Below are positions 4,194 to 14,398 of a DNA stretch of 64,000 bases, in pieces. Numbering within the stretch: position 1 is the first letter of the stretch; each line of letters opens with the position of its first letter. The position numbers were made by a program, and so were the translations under genes. The stretch is from the NCBI RefSeq assembly GCF_964194025.1, contig NC_134481.1:23994001-24058000 (forward strand), written 5' to 3'. The stretch is from Convolutriloba macropyga. Taxonomy: Eukaryota. The notes beneath the pieces were generated by a model. That model was not told where the DNA came from. It ran no database searches and saw only the letters and a program-made list of their open reading frames with translations.

Positions 4194-4243
4194 CACTACT
4201 TAATCCTATTGCTACTATATCTACGGCTAGTACTAGTACTGGT
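4194..4243 (+). repeat. Degenerate TAC/TAG-rich microsatellite running into the first N gap
   Basis: actacttaatcctattgctactatatctacggctagtactagtactggt lies immediately before the Ns. Confidence 0.55.
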
Positions 4244-4631
4244 NNNNNNNNNNNNNNNNNNNNNNNNNNNNNNNNNNNNNNNNNNNNNNNNNNNNNNNNN
4301 NNNNNNNNNNNNNNNNNNNNNNNNNNNNNNNNNNNNNNNNNNNNNNNNNNNNNNNNNNNNNNNNNNNNNNNNNNNNNNNNNNNNNNNNNNNNNNNNNNNN
4401 NNNNNNNNNNNNNNNNNNNNNNNNNNNNNNNNNNNNNNNNNNNNNNNNNNNNNNNNNNNNNNNNNNNNNNNNNNNNNNNNNNNNNNNNNNNNNNNNNNNN
4501 NNNNNNNNNNNNNNNNNNNNNNNNNNNNNNNNNNNNNNNNNNNNNNNNNNNNNNNNNNNNNNNNNNNNNNNNNNNNNNNNNNNNNNNNNNNNNNNNNNNN
4601 NNNNNNNNNNNNNNNNNNNNNNNNNNNNNNN

Positions 4632-5100
4632 NTCTTTCGAAATTAATGGAGAGAAAACTTGAGAGTTTCCACTGTGGTTGTCTTCGGAGAATTCTACGTG
4701 TGTCATATCTGGAGAAAGCAACGAACGAAGAAATTATGTCAAGATCACGAATGCCCCAACTATCCACGATGATCATGCTCAAACGGATAAAATGGTACGG
4801 ACACATCCAGAGAATGGAACCAGGAAGATTAGCCCGCAGTGCCTTCGATTGGGACCCGCCCGATCAATACGTCCATGCTAGACGCGCTCCTGGGGGGCAA
4901 CGGAAAACGTGGATGAGTCAAATCGAAGGAGACTGTGTACGAAACAAAGTATCGTTCACCAGATTGCAGGAGAAAGCAGCAACCGGGTCAAAGAATGCCT
5001 TCAACAATTTCGTCGTACAGCACTTCACAGAATAACCAAACAAAAAACTCTTCTTGTTTTGTTTGTATTTGTTGCCAACCGTGCCTTTATTTCATATTTG
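4632..5100 (+). mobile_element. RTE-clade LINE 3' fragment (subfamily A), near-identical to 8461-8929
   Basis: Encodes KLMERKLESFHCGCLRRIL...KWYGHIQRM...PGGQRKTW, with only a few substitutions versus the neighbouring long copy, including the 3' UTR. Confidence 0.95.
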
Positions 5101-5233
5101 NNNNNNNNNNNNNNNNNNNNNNNNNNNNNNNNNNNNNNNNNNNNNNNNNNNNNNNNNNNNNNNNNNNNNNNNNNNNNNNNNNNNNNNNNNNNNNNNNNNN
5201 NNNNNNNNNNNNNNNNNNNNNNNNNNNNNNCAA

Positions 5234-5309
5234 CCTCACCTCCACGTGGTGTCCCATGGGGGTAGGTCATGTGCTGCGGCTCTCCGCTCACATGGTCGAG
5301 CTAACGAGG
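5234..5309 (+). ncRNA. HDV-like self-cleaving ribozyme core, copy A (5' P1 strand not visible, presumably in the N gap)
   Basis: P2 CCTC/GAGG; P3 ACC/GGT with L3 TCCACGT; P1 3' strand GTCCCAT; GG for P1.1; P4 GGTCATGTG/CACATGGTC plus GCGG/CCGC; J4/2 GCTAA with putative catalytic C5301. Confidence 0.85.
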
Positions 5310-5368
5310 CACTGGTCTTCTAGTTTGTGGCGCAATTAGTCGTATCTCAGCCTTCAAACACCAAAGCA

Positions 5369-8300
5369 ATGAGTACATTCAACCATGGCCCCGAGTCCCG
5401 TGTAAGGGGTGCTAAGAATCTCCCGAGGAACCAACTCAGAATTGCAACTTTAAACGTCAGAACACTGACCCAAGCCGGATCTTTAGAGGCTTTGAAAATG
5501 GATCTGGCGCAATACAAGTTGGATATTCTGGGAGTGCAGGAGACGAGATTGCAGGAGCAAGAAATTGATCTCGGAGACCACAAGCTCTACCTGTCTGACT
5601 CGTGGTTGTCTGGTGTAAAGTCGAGACAAGGAGGAGTGGGCGTTGCTGTAAAGAAGTCATTGATAAACAGCATCGTAGAACAAGTGGCTCTAAGTGAACG
5701 TATTTGCTACGTCAAGTTCGCGGCTCGGAGGAGAGCCAATCTAGCTGTTGTTGTCTGCTACGCACCTACGAATGAAGCTAGTCTCCAAGAGAAGGATTTG
5801 TTTTGGAGTCAACTTTCAGACCTAGTTTCCAGCTTCAAACATAGGGAGCGTATTTGTGTCATCGGTGACCTCAATGCAGAGCCTGGACACCAGTTGAATG
5901 ACACCATGAGCTGCAGAGGCCCGTTTGGAATGGGTGAAGAAAATGAAAACTCGGAAAAGTTGTTATCATTTTGCACTTCACACAAATTGCTCTTAGGTGG
6001 TACATGGTTCCAGCATCGACAAGTGCATCGGTACACCTACAACCCTCCCGATCCGAGTTGTCGAAAAAAGATGCTGGATCACATTCTGTTTGCAGAGAGA
6101 TACAGAGGATGTCTGACGAAAGTGAGGACCAGAAGAGGGAAAACCACAATTACCGATCATGAATTGGTCATTGCGGAAGTATCTATGAAACTTTTGTCTA
6201 AAAAGCCATGTTTCACGCCCAGAATCAGTTCTGCAAAGCTGCAAGATGAAACAACGCGTGACTTATTCACGCAGGAGGTCAAGTTACATCTTGATAAGAG
6301 CGGCGATTTCGAGAATACAGAGCAGTCTTGGGACAATTTTCGAAAAGCCCTGAACCAAGCAGCAGTGAAATGCCTCCTTCCGGACAAGCGAGTGAACAAA
6401 CCTTGGATTTCTCCAGATTCTCTGGAACTTATCCGGAAACGAGCTGATCTACAGTTGAAGAAACACAGCAGCGCGGTGGCGTTGTTAGAGTTCACAAACT
6501 GCTGTAAGGAAGTCAGAAAAGCTCTACGTGCAGACAAACGGGCATGGCTTGACCGCAAAGGCCAAGAAGTGCAGAGCTTTGCGGACAGAGGCAACTTGAA
6601 GGAGGTTTTTGGGGCATCACAGCAGATTTGCCGCAACTGGAGTCCCCAGTTGACCAAATTAGTTTCAAGCACTGGCGTCAACTTACGGACGAAAGAGGAA
6701 CGACTTGAACGCTGGACGGAACATTTTAGTCAACTCCTGAATCCCTCAACATCCAGTTGCAGTACGAGATTGGATCCCGAAGAAGCAGCTGAAAGCTTGT
6801 CGATTGACCCCAATTCGATTTGAAGAAGTGCTTGAAGCTGTCCGCAGGTTGAAGAATGGCAAGGCAAGTGGACCCGATAACATTTCCTGTGAGATGTTGA
6901 AAGCACGCAAGGGTATTGTCGAGTGGCTCTGGGACATCATAGATAAGTGTTGGTCGACGGAAGTTCTGCCCGATGACTGAAAGGTAGCAGAAATTGTCCC
7001 ATTATACAAGAGTAAAGGAAAGAGGTCAGAGTGTTCGAACCACCGAGGGATCTCTCTATTGTCAGTACCAGGCAAAGTGTTCGCTTCCGTTATTCTCAAT
7101 CGATGCAAAGATTCAGTGGATCGCGTCTTAAGGGAAGAGCAGCGCGGCTTCAGAAAAAGCAGAGGATGAGCCGATCAACTCTTTGCCCTGCGTCAAATAA
7201 TAGAGAAATCTATGGCGTTTCAATTGGATATTAGCTTTTGTTTCATAGACTTTCGAGCGGCATTCGATTCTGTCGATCGTGAGCAGATGTACCAGATAAT
7301 GAAACACTATGGTCTTCCGCAAAAAGTGATAAACATCATAAGAAACAGCTATGATGGATTCAAATGTCGAGTCAAAGCCGAAGGTGAGAAAGGACGCTTA
7401 TTTGATGTCAGAACGGGCGTTAGGCAGGGTGATGTGTGGTCCCCAATCCTATTCGGCCTTGTCATCAACTACATTTTGGCTAACTCGGTGCATGGAGGAT
7501 TAGACATTGGGAGATTGGTGGCTGACTTAGATTTTGCTGATGATGTTGCTCTCGTGGGGGTCTCAGACAGTGAGGTGCAAGAAAACCTACATCGAATCGA
7601 GGCCCTTGCGGAAGCCGCTGGTCTGAAGATTAATGTGGCCAAAACAAAGAATTTGGGCGTAAAATGCGACAGCTCAAATATTGTTGCAGTGCCTAGTATC
7701 CAACAGAACGTGGAGATACTCACTGGAACACATAAAGGCAAACTAGGACTCCTGGCAGAGACATCTAGCCAGTCACGACTAACCATCAGCACGGAGGTGC
7801 TGCTGGGAACGAAAAAGAAAGCGTGCTGGTTCGAAACACAAGATGGCCGGAAGCTAAGATTGAAAAGCTTAGCGGTGGCTAAGCCAGCGTTGGTAGCTTC
7901 ACAACAACAATCTGCAGTAGCAGATTCAGAGTCGCTAGAAAATGAGAGTCGGTCAGTGGTGGCTGACCAAGAGTCTTTAAGATGTCAGAATTGTCAGCGG
8001 CAATTCAGTACAGTTACCGGACGCAAAGTGCACCAAACAAGATTCTGCAAAGCCGGTTTGTCAAAGAATGTCGTCGACAAGTCAAAGTTCGAGCAACTAG
8101 AGGCGAGTCTTACCTGTGACAAGTGTGAAAGAAAGTTCAAAACAGTCAATGGCCGAAAAGTTCACCAATCGAGATACTGTGGCAAACCTAAAGCAGTTGC
8201 CACACGCGTGTTTTCCTGCAAAGTACAAGATGTTCTCGGAAACGAGTTTGAAAACATAGAAGCGTTCAAGTATCTCGGATCATATGTCAGCCTCAAGCAT

Positions 8301-8864
8301 GGAGACCTGCAGGAAGTCAATTGCAAACTTGCAGAAGGTAGACAACGGTTTGCTAACTTCCAAAATCTCTGGAAGGGCAAGCAGCTCAGCGTGCACCTCA
8401 AGTGCAATTTGTACAAAGCACTCGTTTTATCAGCCGTGCTGTACAGCTCAGAGACTTGGACTCTTTTGAAATTAATGGAGAGAAAACTTGAGAGTTTCCA
8501 CTGTGGTTGTCTTCGGAGAATTCTACGTGTGTCATATCTGGAGAAAGCAACGAACGAAGAAATTATGTCAAGATCACGAATGCCCCAACTATCCACGATG
8601 ATCATGCTCAAACGGATAAAATGGTACGGACACATCCAGAGAATGGAACCAGGAAGATTAGCCCGCAGTGCCTTCGATTGGGACCCGCCCGATCAATACG
8701 TCCATGCTAGACGCGCTCCTGGGGGGCAACGGAAAACGTGGATGAGTCAAATCGAAGGAGACTGTGTACGAAACAAAGTATCGTTCACCAGATTGCAGGA
8801 GAAAGCAGCAACCGAGTCAAAGAATGCCTTCAACAATTTCGTCGTACAGCACTTCACAGAATAA
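5369..8864 (+). pseudogene. RTE APE-endonuclease/RT ORF with a frameshift near 6808 and in-frame TGA codons at 6978 and 7167
   Basis: ORFs 5327-6823 and 7212-8864 are bridged by an alternative frame reading PIRFEEVLEAVRRLKNGKASGPDNI...PDD*KVAEIVPLYK...NHRGISLLS...EEQRGFRKSRG*ADQ. Confidence 0.92.
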
Positions 8865-9266
8865 CCAAACAAATAACTCTTCTTGTTTTGTTTGTATTTG
8901 TTGCCAACCGTGCCTTTATTTCATATTTGGAATTAAAGTGTNNNNNNNNNNNNNNNNNNNNNNNNNNNNNNNNNNNNNNNNNNNNNNNNNNNNNNNNNNN
9001 NNNNNNNNNNNNNNNNNNNNNNNNNNNNNNNNNNNNNNNNNNNNNNNNNNNNNNNNNNNNNNNNNNNNNNNNNNNNNNNNNNNNNNNNNNNNNNNNNNNN
9101 NNNNNNNNNNNNNNNNNNNNNNNNNNNNNNNNNNNNNNNNNNNNNNNNNNNNNNNNNNNNNNNNNNNNNNNNNNNNNNNNNNNNNNNNNNNNNNNNNNNN
9201 NNNNNNNNNNNNNNNNNNNNNNNNNNNNNNNNNNNNNNNNNNNNNNNNNNNNNNNNNNNNNNNNNN

Positions 9267-10198
9267 CAACCTCTCCTCCCCGTGGTGTCCCCTGGGGTAA
9301 GTGATGCAGCAGCTGCCCGTAGGACAGATGCATAGTACAACCGAGCTAACGAGGCAAGGATCCTCTAGTTGGTGGCGCGACTAGTTGTATATAAGCCTTA
9401 AAACCCAATGCAATGACTTCAATACTGCGGAAGAGAAAATGCTGGAAGGTCTCGCATTTTCTCCTGCAATTTCCACGATCGAGATGGAGTGGAGTTCGAA
9501 AATGTAGAAGCTTTCAAGTACCTGGGTTCTTTCGTGAGCTTGCAACATGGTGATCTAAAGGAAATCCGTGTCAAGCTGGCGGAAGGGAGACATTGATTTG
9601 CGAGCTTTCAGAAGCTTTGGAAAAGCAAACAACTTAGTATTCCCCTCAAATTCAAGTTATACAGAGCTCTTGTGTTATCAGTGGTCTTTTGTAGCTCTTA
9701 AACGTGGACCATGAATAAATCAACGCAACGGAAACTTGAGAGCTTTCACACCAGTTGTCTGCGAAGGATACTATGTTTATCATATATGGAGAGGGTGACA
9801 AATGAAGAAGTACTGGCTAGATCATGTATGTCGACACTTTCTGCAATGATCATGATTAAATGGTTGAAATGGTTTGGCCATGTCCTGAGGATGAATGACG
9901 ATCGTCTAGCGCTTCGAGCCTTCACCTGGGAGCCGACAGAAAAATATTGTTATGCTAAACGAGCTTCAGGGGGTCAACGCAAGACGTGGCTGGACCAACT
10001 TGAAGAACATTGCTCAAGGAACAACATGAGCTACATCACCTTACGACAGAAAGCGAAAAAAGAGTCTAAATCCCGCTTGAACAGTTTTGTCGAACAGCAT
10101 TTCCTGGATTAAATAAACGCAAATAAGCTCAACTTATATACATTTAATTAACTTGTTTGTACTTATTTTCATTGTACCTTTATTTCTTTATGGAATTT
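9267..10198 (+). mobile_element. Internally deleted non-autonomous RTE copy (subfamily B)
   Basis: Ribozyme, 5' UTR and ATGACTTCAA are fused at about 9422 to YCG...FENVEAFKYLGS and the C-terminus. About 2.8 kb is missing relative to copy A. Confidence 0.88.
9270..9354 (+). ncRNA. HDV-like ribozyme core, copy B
   Basis: CCTC-TCC-TCCCCGT-GGT-GTCCCCT-GG, a different P4 (GGT/ACC, ATGCA/TGCAT, CTG/CAG), then GCTAAC-GAGG. One P3 mismatch. Confidence 0.8.
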
Positions 10199-10453
10199 NN
10201 NNNNNNNNNNNNNNNNNNNNNNNNNNNNNNNNNNNNNNNNNNNNNNNNNNNNNNNNNNNNNNNNNNNNNNNNNNNNNNNNNNNNNNNNNNNNNNNNNNNN
10301 NNNNNNNNNNNNNNNNNNNNNNNNNNNNNNNNNNNNNNNNNNNNNNNNNNNNNNNNNNNNNNNNNNNNNNNNNNNNNNNNNNNNNNNNNNNNNNNNNNNN
10401 NNNNNNNNNNNNNNNNNNNNNNNNNNNNNNNNNNNNNNNNNNNNNNNNNNNNN

Positions 10454-13400
10454 AATCCATCCTCACCTCCCAGTGGTGTCCTCTGGGGTAAGCGTTGCGG
10501 GGCTCTGTCGCGCAAGCTGAGCTAACGAGGCAATGGTCCTCTAGTAGGTGGCGCGACTAGTTGTATTATAGCCAACAACCCTATAATAAGACTTCAACTA
10601 ATGAGAAAAGCCACGAGTCCCGAGTAAGGATTGCTAAGAATCTCACGTGGACAAAAATGAAGATTGGATTCCTAAATTTCAAGACGTTTGCTCATGCTGG
10701 TTGTTAGCAGACGCCTAAAATGGACTTAGCAAAGTACGAATTAGACATTTTAGGAATTCAAAAAACCATATTTGACGAACAGGCGATGGACCTTGGAACG
10801 CACAAACTCTTGTTTACCAACTCATTGCGTTGCTTCAATTGTTCAAAAAAAAGCAGTTGTGGACATTTTGGTTAAGAAGACACTGCTTGGCTGCATAATC
10901 GAAAACGTGACTGTGAATGAACGCTTGTGCTATATCAAATTTTCTGTGCAGTAAAAAACAAATTTCATCGTCATTGTATGTTATGCGCCGGCAAATGAAG
11001 CGGATATTTAAAATAAAGGAAGGGTTTTAAGGATTTTTGAACACTCTAACAAGTTTGACAAAATGTTTCAGAGAAAGGGAGCGCAAAAGTCTTATCGGAG
11101 ACTTCAATGCAGTGCCGAGAAGTAATAAACAGATTAAACATCTATGCATTGGCTCTTTTGGTTTTGGCGATGAGAACGATAACACAGAAAATTTATGAGT
11201 CTCTGTGATGCAAACAAACTAATGATTGGAGGAATATGGTTTCGCCGCCGTTTTGTGCATAGGTACACTTTCAACCCACAGCATAAAAAATGTAGGAAGA
11301 AACTGTTGGATCGTGTATTGCTCACAAGTCGTTAAGGCAGCTGTTTACAAGATGTCAGAACCAAAAAAGGAAATTCTACTTTGACTGATCATGAATTATT
11401 GAGAGCACTTTTAGATATTAAACTGCAGAACTCTAAACTTCGTATAACTGCAAAAATTAAACTGACAAAATTGCATGACGAAGTGGTTCAAACCGAGTTC
11501 AACAAATTAGTGAAAATAAAATTGCATGAGAATGAGGATGTTGACGACGTTGAACAATCGTGGCTCATTTTTCGCAGTGCTCTTAACGAAGCTGCCTCAA
11601 ATGTAATTGTGCAGGATATAAAAATCACAAGCCATAGATATCTAAAGAGACAATCGATCTCATTATAAAGAGAGGCGAGATGCAGTTAAAGAAAAACTCA
11701 AGCAAAGCGGAGGCTTTGTTTTAGACCAATTTGAATAGATAAACGAACTCAAGTGAAGCAGAGGCTTTGGTTGAGTAAACTGACACTAAACCTAACAAAC
11801 CGGAGACTTTGATAGAATTTGAAGACTGCTACAAACTTGTGCAAAATACTGTGCGGGCTGATAAAAGAAAATGGCTCACTGAAAAAGGTACTCTGATTCA
11901 AGAACTTGCTGATAAAGATAGCATCAAAAAACAAAACTTTTTGTTTTTTGATGCTCTTGATCACTACTTCGTACAAGGGCAACATCATCAGCAAAGTCAA
12001 GGTCCGCAACAATTTGGCCAATGTCTGTTCCACCACGCACGACTTCGAACAGGAAAAGAGACCATACATCACCTTGACGAACTCCAGCTCTAACCTCAAA
12101 TGTATCCCCTACCTCTCCTTCAGATTTGACTCGACATTTGAAGCCGTCATAGCTATTCCTGATAATGTTCACAATTTTTACAAGTAGTCCATATTGTTTC
12201 AGTATTTCGTACATGCTGTCTCTCACAATTGAATCAAAAGCCAATCTAAAGTCAATAAGGCAGAGACTAAGATCACTTGGTTCCACAACGCTTTTTCAAT
12301 AATCTATCTTAGCGCAAAAAGCTGGTCGGTACAACCTCTGCTCTTCTTGAATCCACACTGCTCTTCCCTCAATACCTTATCTAGATTTTCCTTGCATCTG
12401 TTTAGAGATACTGCGGCAAACACTTTCCCGGCACTGACAGTAGAGAGATGCCACAATAATTGCTACAGTCTGTTCGTTTTCCATTCTTCTTGTACATAGG
12501 ATTGAAGAAACTGCGCAGAAGGTTGGTTTCCTGAATAACTTTAGCATGACCAAGAACATGGGTGTATCGCTTCAACACACAATGGCCTTAACATCAGCAC
12601 AGCAAAATCAAGTCGAGATTATAAAAGGACGTTACAAAGGACAATCTGGATTCCTCGGGAAGATAGACAAAACCTTGAGTTTATCCATTGGCACGGAGGT
12701 GCTCGAGGGAACGAAGAAAAAAATTAGGCTGGTTTGAAACCTTGAAAGGAGACAAATTCTGACATGCAAGACTGGTCACAATGGACCACCGGAACTTACA
12801 AACGAATCAAACAATGCTCGAAGTGTAAGCGTTGTTTTGATACTGCGGTTGGACGAAAAGTACCCGAGTCAAGATATGGCAAGAAAGCTGATGAAAACAC
12901 AATGCCTCAGTTAGTGAAGCCCATTGGTGCGAAGTTCGAAAACCTTGAAAAGAACTTTAGATGAAATAGATGCCAACAAAAATTCAAGTCTGTAACGGTC
13001 GGTCGAAAAATACAAGAAGCGAGATATTGCGGTAAACTGAAAGCCAGAGTTCATAGATGTCTTTCTAGCAGTGTAAAGGACGCTTCGGGTACCGAAATTG
13101 AGAGCGTTCGTGGTTTAAATTGTCTAAGATCTTACGTCAGTTTACAGGACGGTGATGCAGAAGAAAATATCTGTAAATTGGCTGAAGGTAGACAACGCTT
13201 CAGTGATTTTTCGAACATATGGAAAAACAAACAATTAGCGACAACATTGAAGTGCAAGCTTTACAGAGCGTTCATCTTGTCAGCGGTGTTGTGCAGCTCG
13301 GAGACATGGACGATAAACCAAGCGTTAGTGAAAAAACTCGATAGCTTACATCTCAACTGCCTACGTTGTATACTTTGTTTGTCTCACATGCCAAAATAAC

Positions 13401-13827
13401 TAACCAGTCTGTGCTTAACAAAACACTGATGCCAACCATATCAAAAATTGTCTTAATCAGACGCTTTAAATGGTTTGGACACATCCAAAGAATAGAGAGC
13501 AACAGACTGCTAAGGAAAACTCTTGAAAGGCACCCCACTGAGCACTATCCAAATGCCGTGAAATCTGTTGGAGGACAGCGAAAGACATTGCTAGATCAAC
13601 TGCAAAACGACTGCAACAGAAACAAGATAGATTTTTCAGTGGTTCAAGTAAGAGCTATTAGCAATTCGAGATCAGTCTTCAACAAATTCGTCAACGAAAA
13701 ACTTCTCGTTTAATTGATAACTTGATTTCGATTTAATTTAATGATTACTACGTTTATATTCTTGCCTGAAATCCATGCTTGATTGTCTTGTGATAGTGCT
13801 TCTATTTCTTAATGGAATTCAAGTGTT
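10454..13827 (+). mobile_element. Old degraded RTE copy (subfamily C) with an internal deletion and an inverted RT block (about 11936-12493)
   Basis: Fragmented APE motifs on +; IDFRLAFDSI/GVRQGD/DFADD on the minus strand (ORF 11924-12286); + strand resumes with HRIEE...TKNMGV, the KOW/ZnF insert and the C-terminus. Confidence 0.9.
10461..10530 (+). ncRNA. HDV-like ribozyme core, copy C
   Basis: CCTC-ACC-TCCCAGT-GGT-GTCCTCT-GG, P4 AGC.TTGCG/CGCAA-GCT, then GCTAAC-GAGG. Confidence 0.83.
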
Positions 13828-13858
13828 GTATCAGTAGTAGTATTAGTAGTAGTATTAC
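13828..13858 (+). repeat. (TAG)n-like tail at the 3' end of RTE copy C
   Basis: gtatcagtagtagtattagtagtagtattac directly follows the conserved 3' end ggaattcaagtgtt. Confidence 0.8.
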
Positions 13859-13859
13859 T

Positions 13860-14398
13860 TGTATTATTTGTCAATGGTCTTTTTTAGCTCTGAAACGTGG
13901 ACCATGAACAAACAAACGCAGCGAGTAAATGAAAGTTTTCACTGCAGTTGTCTGCAAAGGATCCTATGTATATCAAACCTGGAGAGGATGACAAATGAAG
14001 GAGTACTAGCTAGATCACTTATGTCGACTTTTTCTGCAATGATCATAATGAAACGGTTTAAATGGTTTGGCCTTGTCTTGAGGATGAATTACAATCGTTT
14101 AGAGCTCCGAGTCTTCACCTGGGAGCCGACAGAAAAATACAGTTAAGAAAACGAACTCCAAGGGGTCAACGCAAGACATGGCTGGATCAACTTGAGGAGG
14201 GCTGCTCAAGACACGACATGAGCTACATCGCCTTACGACAGAAAGCCAAAAAAGAGACTAAATCCCGGTTCAACAGTTTTGTCGAAGAGCATTTCTTGGA
14301 TTAAAAAGCTCGAAAAAACTCAAACTTATATGCATTTTATTACCTTGTTTGTACTTATTATCGTTGTTCCTTTATTTCTTTATGGAATTTAAGTGTTT
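13860..14398 (+). mobile_element. 5'-truncated RTE 3' fragment (subfamily B)
   Basis: SSETWTMNKQTQR...PRGQRKTWLDQLEE...EHFLD is highly similar to 9670-10198, including the 3' UTR. Confidence 0.9.

Follow-up and report, generated by a model that had tools for sequence, protein, structure and literature searches.

The stretch analysed here (the window) comprises 64,000 nucleotides of the Convolutriloba macropyga genome (NCBI RefSeq assembly GCF_964194025.1, contig NC_134481.1, positions 23,994,001 to 24,058,000 of the forward strand), and coordinates are those of the window unless stated otherwise. It holds one copy of an RTE-type retrotransposon, a member of a young family that we call F1, in which the reverse transcriptase (RT) carries 194 additional residues between its motifs 6 and 7. 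These residues are in frame with the RT and comprise a predicted β-barrel, an acidic spacer and two zinc fingers. We are almost certain that they are a genuine multi-domain insertion in the RT, maintained by selection. The site at which they lie, their conservation in three families and the arrangement of the copies in the genome suggest a role for the module in the recognition of target DNA, which is weighed below against other explanations.

An RTE-type element with an enlarged gap between RT motifs 6 and 7

The F1 copy in the window is composed of the following parts.

5232-8942, plus strand: copy of F1, the young insert-bearing RTE family, flanked by two masked stretches
5444-6103, plus strand: APE-type endonuclease domain (Pfam Exo_endo_phos, E 3e-12, residues 40-259 of the open reading frame (ORF) at 5327-6820)
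7233-7655, plus strand: RT core up to motif 6 (Pfam RVT_1, E 3e-17, ending at profile position 192 of 205)
7533-7544, plus strand: FADD, read from the sequence
7626-7649, plus strand: KINVAKTK, RT motif 6, read from the sequence
7650-8231, plus strand: the whole inserted module, 194 residues, corresponding to residues 777-970 of the intact ORF and to 11 codons in an insert-less RTE family
7695-7874, plus strand: six-strand SH3/KOW-like β-barrel (AlphaFold2 (AF2) strands, conservation in three families and the ratio of nonsynonymous to synonymous substitution rates (dN/dS))
7710-7754, plus strand: barrel motif VEILTGTHKGKLGLL, read from the sequence
7875-7982, plus strand: spacer, acidic and rich in Ser and Ala, of variable length and sequence, with disorder predicted
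7983-8048, plus strand: zinc finger 1, CQNCQRQFSTVTGRKVHQTRFC, C-x2-C-x12-H-x4-C
8049-8114, plus strand: inter-finger spacer of 22 residues, with a short predicted helix
8115-8180, plus strand: zinc finger 2, CDKCERKFKTVNGRKVHQSRYC, C-x2-C-x12-H-x4-C, followed by a conserved GK/GR
8265-8282, plus strand: FKYLGS, RT motif 7, read from the sequence
8265-8864, plus strand: motif 7, thumb and C-terminal region up to the stop codon (ORF list, AF2 model and sequence)

The element has a single ORF with an N-terminal APE endonuclease followed by the RT, as recognized by the Exo_endo_phos and RVT_1 matches above. The full ORF of 1,180 amino acids (aa) is read in one genomic copy, and the window copy is 97% identical to this intact ORF over residues 1-498 and 495-1180 (tblastn). 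The window copy itself is defective: its frame is broken near 6808, and TGA codons stand in frame at 6978-6980 and 7167-7169; most contigs have five extra bases after 6808 and a C at 7169. All of the defects lie upstream of the insert, and the stop-free frame at 7212-8864 (550 codons in the ORF list) contains the whole insert and both RT motifs. No Pfam domain beyond the endonuclease and the RT, and thus neither an RNase H nor a C-terminal CCHC domain, was found on the ORF pieces, and no zinc finger was seen outside the insert. Minus the insert, the ORF is about 990 aa long, and RTE-like relatives are 950-1,050 aa. The nearest relatives in the databases are unnamed APE and RT proteins of about 1,000 aa, most of them with a DUF6451 signature after motif 7. 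The RTE clade name used here is a provisional one, based on the architecture and on the assignment made in the original prediction, an earlier reading of the letters of this stretch, rather than on curated RTE, RTEX or Proto2 references.

The distance between motif 6 (KINVAKTK) and motif 7 (FKYLGS) in the window is 205 aa (7626-8282). The original prediction had counted about 208 aa and had placed motif 6 at 7641, and apart from these small corrections the in-frame insert that it described inside the RT is there. Its span for the insert, 7665-8230, also comes close to the 7650-8231 that we obtain by alignment to an RTE family of this genome that lacks the insert. In this family, 11 codons separate two blocks that align to residues 228-776 and to residues 971-1140 of the intact ORF, and because the alignment skips the part in between we place the insert at residues 777-970. 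The RVT_1 match breaks off exactly at the insert, at profile position 192 of 205. The insert-less family is 32-38% identical to the insert-bearing one; it is itself young, with open frames of 1,016-1,036 aa (L051, L052, L054 and L055; e.g. G000:C4:23515079-23515528).

We surveyed the motif 6-7 gap in 120 RTE-like proteins gathered by homology, 90 of which had motifs that could be parsed. The gap was 20-29 aa in 77 of the 90 and 30-39 aa in another 6, so the expectation that RTE elements normally have a far shorter gap holds for 83 relatives. Among the 90, a gap of about 205 aa was restricted to the insert-bearing family, and one unrelated protein (P0201) had a gap of 227 aa. The element thus resembles members of the RTE clade such as RTE-1, BovB and Rex3 in having one ORF with an N-terminal APE domain and an RT, and the insert-bearing copies share with them a 5'-truncation depth profile. 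It differs from them in the 194 extra residues between motifs 6 and 7, in the long stem of the insert-bearing clade, which is 32-40% identical to other RTE-like RTs, and in the strict head-to-tail arrays formed by its copies.

The module is conserved in three families and was acquired once

A first-look search of the 1.18-Gb genome with the insert alone gave 2,277 candidates. Among these, the top 150 are 97-98% identical, all but one are free of stop codons, and about 23 of them lie within open frames of 1,175-1,186 aa. Young intact copies therefore carry the insert, since the stop-free copies at this level of identity include full-length ORFs. Absence of the insert from such copies, which would have spoken against the original prediction, is not what we see.

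Three diverged families, F1, F2 and F3, carry the insert at 42-64% identity. F3 is 64% identical to F1 (P0090, P0011, P0091), and F2 is 42-58% identical to F1. The motifs LTGxHKG and KKxAGWFET...KLRLK and both C-x2-C-x12-H-x4-C fingers are retained across the three families, and all eight zinc ligands are retained in the less decayed copies of F2 and F3. Between families the proportion of synonymous differences (pS) is saturated at 0.65-1.0, and the proportion of nonsynonymous differences (pN) is 0.24-0.29 in the barrel, 0.16-0.34 in the fingers (0.16-0.23 in finger 2) and 0.17-0.24 in the RT core. Where dS can be estimated, the between-family dN/dS is 0.12-0.22, with values of 0.14-0.19 for the barrel. 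The barrel and the fingers are under purifying selection, like the RT core. The spacer between barrel and fingers, with a pN of 0.41-0.75, is near neutral, and in F2 it is about 19 residues shorter. Neutral evolution of the insert, a further outcome that would have told against the original prediction, is thus nearly reached in the spacer but not in the barrel and the fingers. Within families dN/dS is 0.3-1.0 in the insert and the RT alike, values that are uninformative because dead copies decay neutrally.

When the insert columns were left out of a tree of the RT, the six insert-bearing rows formed one clade with a support of 100 and a stem of 0.85 changes per site. Since these rows form one clade, a single acquisition accounts for them, in a common ancestor from which at least three of the genome's families descend. 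In two word-indexed searches and an exhaustive phmmer search of 1.84 billion representatives, the whole insert was found only in ENA proteins. The three of these that were traced to their source (P0010, P0011 and P0017) come from one assembly that also holds a near-identical F1 copy and is from the same or a very close species. The insert-bearing clade was found only in assemblies of this species, in protein sets in which ORFs of transposable elements are poorly represented.

The RT fold is predicted to be intact, with the module looped out

Predicted structures were judged by the predicted local distance difference test (pLDDT), the predicted template modelling score (pTM) and the positions of strands and helices. 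The AF2 model of 701 aa of RT plus insert, calculated with 106 aligned relatives, has a pLDDT of 87.5 and a pTM of 0.76. The predicted RT matches the target-primed reverse transcription (TPRT) complexes of R2Bm, R2Tg and human L1 ORF2p at E values of about 1e-20. In this model the RT fold is predicted to be intact and the module to be looped out from it, which is the arrangement that the original prediction had expected from such a model, with a barrel and two fingers. The barrel has a pLDDT of 83-94 in the context of the RT, with its strands at model residues 315-370. Both fingers are predicted to adopt a β-β-α fold (pLDDT 69-86), the helix of finger 1 lying at model residues 419-428 (pLDDT 69-82) and that of finger 2 at 463-472 (pLDDT 74-86). 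When the module was folded alone from a shallow alignment, a six-strand barrel was again predicted at residues 17-73 (pLDDT 76-87), finger 1 was moderately confident and the spacer was disordered. The pLDDT of the spacer is below 50 both alone and in the context of the RT.

Barrel and fingers compared with known domains

The original prediction had described the first domain as KOW-like. The barrel is recovered in the AF2 models, and its identity as a KOW domain stays below every significance threshold. Pfam KOW (PF00467) reaches 12.5 bits (cut-off 22.3; E 0.14) and is matched by 2 of 12 family members, and SH3_KIN17_C, KOW7_SPT5 and GPKOW_C give equally weak hints. The top rows of a Foldseek search of the PDB are Spt5 KOW5, KOW2-3 and ribosomal KOW proteins at E 0.06-0.3, the Spt5 KOW5 match having about 20% identity over 57-59 columns and a probability of up to 0.98. 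VIA-align places a phage protein first (Z 5.6), with PH-like folds close behind, and a search of PDB sequences with the barrel profile gives uL24 at E 0.33. With respect to the origin of the barrel, nothing significant was obtained in the Pfam, PDB-profile, AlphaFold Database (AFDB) cluster and ESM Atlas shape and feature searches. The barrel resembles the KOW domains of Spt5, NusG and uL24 in being a small barrel of five to six strands with a V-E-I-L-T-G-x-x-K-G-x-x-G start, but no match to them reaches significance. We consider "SH3/KOW-like barrel" a fair description, but the KOW likeness is weakly supported and falls short of establishing the barrel as a member of the KOW family.

The two C-x2-C-x12-H-x4-C fingers were correctly located by the original prediction at 7983-8048 and 8115-8180. 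In all three families both fingers have this spacing, and an aromatic residue is conserved four positions past the second Cys; we infer that the fingers bind zinc. They lie about 44 residues apart, separated by a spacer of 22 residues (25-26 in F2) that differs from the canonical TGEKP linker. Basic residues are conserved on the predicted finger helix, in the pattern G-R/C-K/R-V/I-H-x-x-R-F/Y-C. The Pfam families zf-C2H2, zf-C2HC_2 and zf-C2H2_jaz all remain below their cut-offs, which is common when fingers occur singly or in pairs. In the exhaustive search the fingers are linked to C2H2/C2HC arrays with long spacers, for example P0015, a Copidosoma "xFG20-1-like" protein, at E 6e-36 over 11 stretches. 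When the finger pair was compared with all PDB chains by phmmer, the matches were fingers of the Zif268/EGR1 type at E 0.03-0.06, and no R2 chain was matched, R2 structures being included in the set. The likeness to the N-terminal fingers of R2-group elements that had been suggested for them is thus not supported, and a specific relation to R2 fingers was rejected. By their sequence the fingers are generic classical ones with Cys as the last ligand.

Arrays of C-x2-C-x12-H-x4-C fingers with a spacing of about 40-45 residues also occur together with Tudor and Chromo domains in P0029, P0030 and P0038, the cluster of P0029 coming mainly from ENA. The captured fingers may have come from such proteins. 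A relationship between the barrel and the Tudor or Chromo parts of these proteins was rejected (hhalign probability below 1%).

The insertion site is equivalent to the 6a loop of R2

R2 elements have an insertion, "6a", between RT motifs 6 and 7 that reads the target DNA (PMC10499050). His673 and Lys675 of this loop in R2Bm read the central GC, and deletion of residues 672-677 inhibits nicking; from structure predictions the authors of that study suggested that the loop is unique to R2 among RTs of elements without long terminal repeats (non-LTR elements) (PMC10499050). Motif 6a also wedges into the upstream target DNA in the structures of two vertebrate R2 proteins (PMC12180492; also PMC13188248). 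Motif 6 of an insert-less RTE aligns to R2Bm residues 655-667, directly before 6a (672-677). The module occupies the loop equivalent to R2 6a, because it starts a few residues after KTK. The likeness to the 6a loops seen by cryo-electron microscopy in Bombyx mori, zebra finch and turtle R2 is one of place, between motifs 6 and 7. In size the two are different: the R2 loop is short, the deleted segment being 6 residues, whereas here a folded multi-domain module of 194 residues is present. The proteins also differ in their other domains, since the nuclease of R2 is restriction-like and C-terminal and its zinc-finger and Myb domains are N-terminal, and the present element has an N-terminal APE domain and no terminal fingers.

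The same point in the RT has received an insertion in one further protein. In P0201, an RTE-like protein (Logan contig, L048:412-3090), the insert is 227 aa long and contains two PHD fingers (Pfam E 6e-12). Its RVT_1 match stops at profile position 193 of 205 and FKYLG resumes after the insert. It thus shares with F1 a zinc-binding insertion at the same RT point, but the domains are PHD fingers, and in the RT tree P0201 and the insert-bearing clade stand on separate branches. As its branch is unrelated, the graft in P0201 is an independent event, and the motif 6-7 loop has taken in zinc-binding domains at least twice. Other RTE-like APE and RT proteins that have gained zinc fingers, namely P0161, P0198 (from the psyllid Cyamophila willieti) and P0192, differ from both in that their fingers follow the RT, the usual place, and that their motif 6-7 gap is normal. 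These proteins are 1,100-1,225 aa long and have two or three C2H2-type fingers.

Insert-bearing copies form head-to-tail arrays

Neighbouring copies were surveyed within 1.5 kb at 32 loci fetched around F1 inserts (L002-L033). About 25 neighbouring copies were found, all of them on the same strand, and several belong to F2 or F3. Among the best 150 insert matches, the two copies were likewise on the same strand in 8 of 8 pairs closer than 10 kb. A copy lay within 868 nt downstream at 13 of 29 F1 loci as against 0 of 6 loci of the insert-less family (one-sided hypergeometric p of about 0.05). Because the arrays mix families and their members are truncated to variable extents, repeated insertion beside existing copies fits them better than tandem duplication.

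Arrays are present at L003, L004, L008, L016, L024 and about 15 more of the loci L002-L033, and in the window at 4194-14398. Their members show variable 5' truncation, and adjacent copies of different families are 41-82% identical. At the six loci examined the insert-less family looks dispersed rather than arrayed. A different arrangement is seen for three F2 fragments on one strand (L037-L039; G000:C1:14508811, 14510814 and 14512816), which follow each other with a period of 2,002-2,003 bp. Given this equal unit length, they look like a tandemly amplified, satellite-like array and not like separate insertions.

Proposed function of the module and alternative explanations

In our view a single-ORF RTE-type element has taken up, in the surface loop that joins RT motifs 6 and 7, a module of three parts, and this module would bind nucleic acid during TPRT. 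It would most likely hold or read the target DNA beside the nick, a job that the 6a loop does in R2 at the same position and that fingers elsewhere in the protein do in R2 and L1. Engagement of the target in this way could bias insertion towards existing copies and so produce head-to-tail arrays. Binding of nucleic acid by the module is likely, and we regard the more specific proposal, that it engages target DNA and biases insertion, as the leading mechanism, though evenly balanced between being right and being wrong. The inference of the original prediction, a module that recognizes target DNA or RNA, is indirectly supported by the 6a-equivalent site and by the strict head-to-tail arrays.

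Several observations weigh against a role in the choice of target. Binding of RNA or protein is frequent among KOW and C2HC domains. The spacer that separates the fingers is long and non-canonical, which speaks against the reading of bases by tandem fingers as in Zif268. The arrays could arise from APE specificity or from annealing of tail repeats without any contribution from the module, and the insert-less control consists of six loci only. The path of the target DNA may differ from that in R2, because the R2 nuclease is C-terminal and the APE domain of RTE elements N-terminal. In L1, the thumb, the wrist and the C-terminal zinc finger domain are the regions that hold the target DNA's second part (PMC7617806). 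As regards expression, the stretch is found in four runs, none of which is on record as RNA.

The module might instead bind the RNA of the element itself, at the 3' untranslated region or the tail repeat, as a template-recognition or chaperone domain. It would then stand in for the ORF1 protein that is missing from single-ORF RTE elements, and the present element does have one ORF only. RNA binding is common among KOW-type barrels and C2HC knuckles, the best Foldseek matches of the barrel are Spt5 KOW5 chains of Pol II elongation complexes, and Pfam gives weak hints (E 0.008-0.011) of zf-C2H2_jaz, a finger that binds double-stranded RNA. These KOW and jaz matches are all below threshold, however, and RNA binding alone does not explain head-to-tail arrays of mixed families. 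In addition, the parallel insertion of PHD fingers in P0201 points to chromatin or the target rather than to the template, and the homologous loop of R2 contacts target DNA and not RNA (PMC10499050, PMC12180492). We consider this explanation rather unlikely. The PHD fingers of P0201, at the same site, offer an analogy for a module that docks to chromatin or protein, in which a reader barrel of the Tudor, chromo or SH3-like type and protein-binding fingers tether the ribonucleoprotein to a host factor or histone mark. The topology of the barrel is SH3-like, its low-Z structural neighbours include PH-, SH3- and Tudor-like folds, and the same type of finger occurs in the Tudor and Chromo proteins P0029, P0030 and P0038. 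Against docking, which seems to us distinctly improbable, the barrel is unrelated to the Tudor and Chromo parts of those proteins (profile-comparison probability below 1%), its conserved aromatic residues are limited to W, F and H/Y, and mixed-family arrays fit sequence targeting better.

The insert could also be a tolerated passenger, either captured host coding sequence or an intron-like stretch that is spliced out, and both the nearly neutral, length-variable spacer and the lack of an RNA run on record that contains the stretch would agree with this. The dN/dS of 0.12-0.22 in the barrel and the fingers is nevertheless equal to that of the RT core, with synonymous sites saturated, and all zinc ligands are conserved. 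The frame is kept in nearly all of the best 150 copies, and intact ORFs of 1,181 aa include the insert. The carrier, present in more than 2,000 copies, is moreover its clade's most successful family. No contig joint falls at the borders of the insert, and only scattered low-depth joints were seen (weak evidence, from four runs with short contigs and an unclear library type). A mere passenger is therefore highly improbable and close to refuted.

Novelty and implications

Neither zinc fingers nor a folded domain inside the RT of an RTE element or of any other long interspersed nuclear element (LINE) were described in the full-text literature that we searched, in which Repbase was not covered, and the statement of the original prediction that no family is known to have zinc fingers inside the palm-thumb region holds within that scope. 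Target choice in APE-type LINEs is usually ascribed to the endonuclease, and in R2 to the N-terminal fingers plus the short 6a loop. In the present case a folded zinc-finger module of 194 residues has been kept by selection inside the polymerase, at the site equivalent to 6a. Together with the PHD fingers that a second lineage has at the same spot, this means that large grafted domains can be accommodated by the RT fold at the motif 6-7 loop, that evolution has used this loop more than once and that the loop may face the target. These points bear on the retargeting of LINE and R2 enzymes for transgene insertion, and on how site-specific LINEs arise from non-specific ones.

A bolder reading, which we offer tentatively and think somewhat improbable, is that APE-type LINEs have, in the motif 6-7 loop, a site into which targeting domains can naturally be plugged, and that the barrel and fingers give the RT sequence-directed recognition of its target. 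On this same speculative footing, the three families might be steered into each other's tails, giving the arrays, and PHD fingers might tether the RT of another lineage to chromatin. If this is true, the element would be the first APE-type LINE with a targeting module in the RT domain rather than in the endonuclease or the terminal domains, and it would offer a ready-made template for retargeting the RTs used for gene writing.

Neighbouring copies and other features of the window

Two further insert-family copies lie downstream of the F1 copy.

9267-10200, plus strand: internally deleted F3 copy, 58% identical to residues 951-1180, its coding match beginning just past the position of finger 2 (RIFSCNFHDRDGVEFENVEAFKYLGS)
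12492-13400, plus strand: decayed F2 copy with 45-47% aa identity, the barrel motif and both fingers retained, broken by stop codons

In the F3 copy, the 5' leader and the first few codons are fused directly to the codons just past finger 2, and this copy may be a short non-autonomous derivative. The F2 copy has a segment at 11942-12500 on the minus strand that matches RT residues 560-755 and is opposite in orientation to the remainder of the copy; this looks like a local inversion. In the F1 copy, the codon at 7822-7824 gives KKKACWFET in place of the KKKAGWFET that is near-invariant in nearly all other copies and families. All contigs compared have T>G at 7824, and the window version is a private change of a dead copy.

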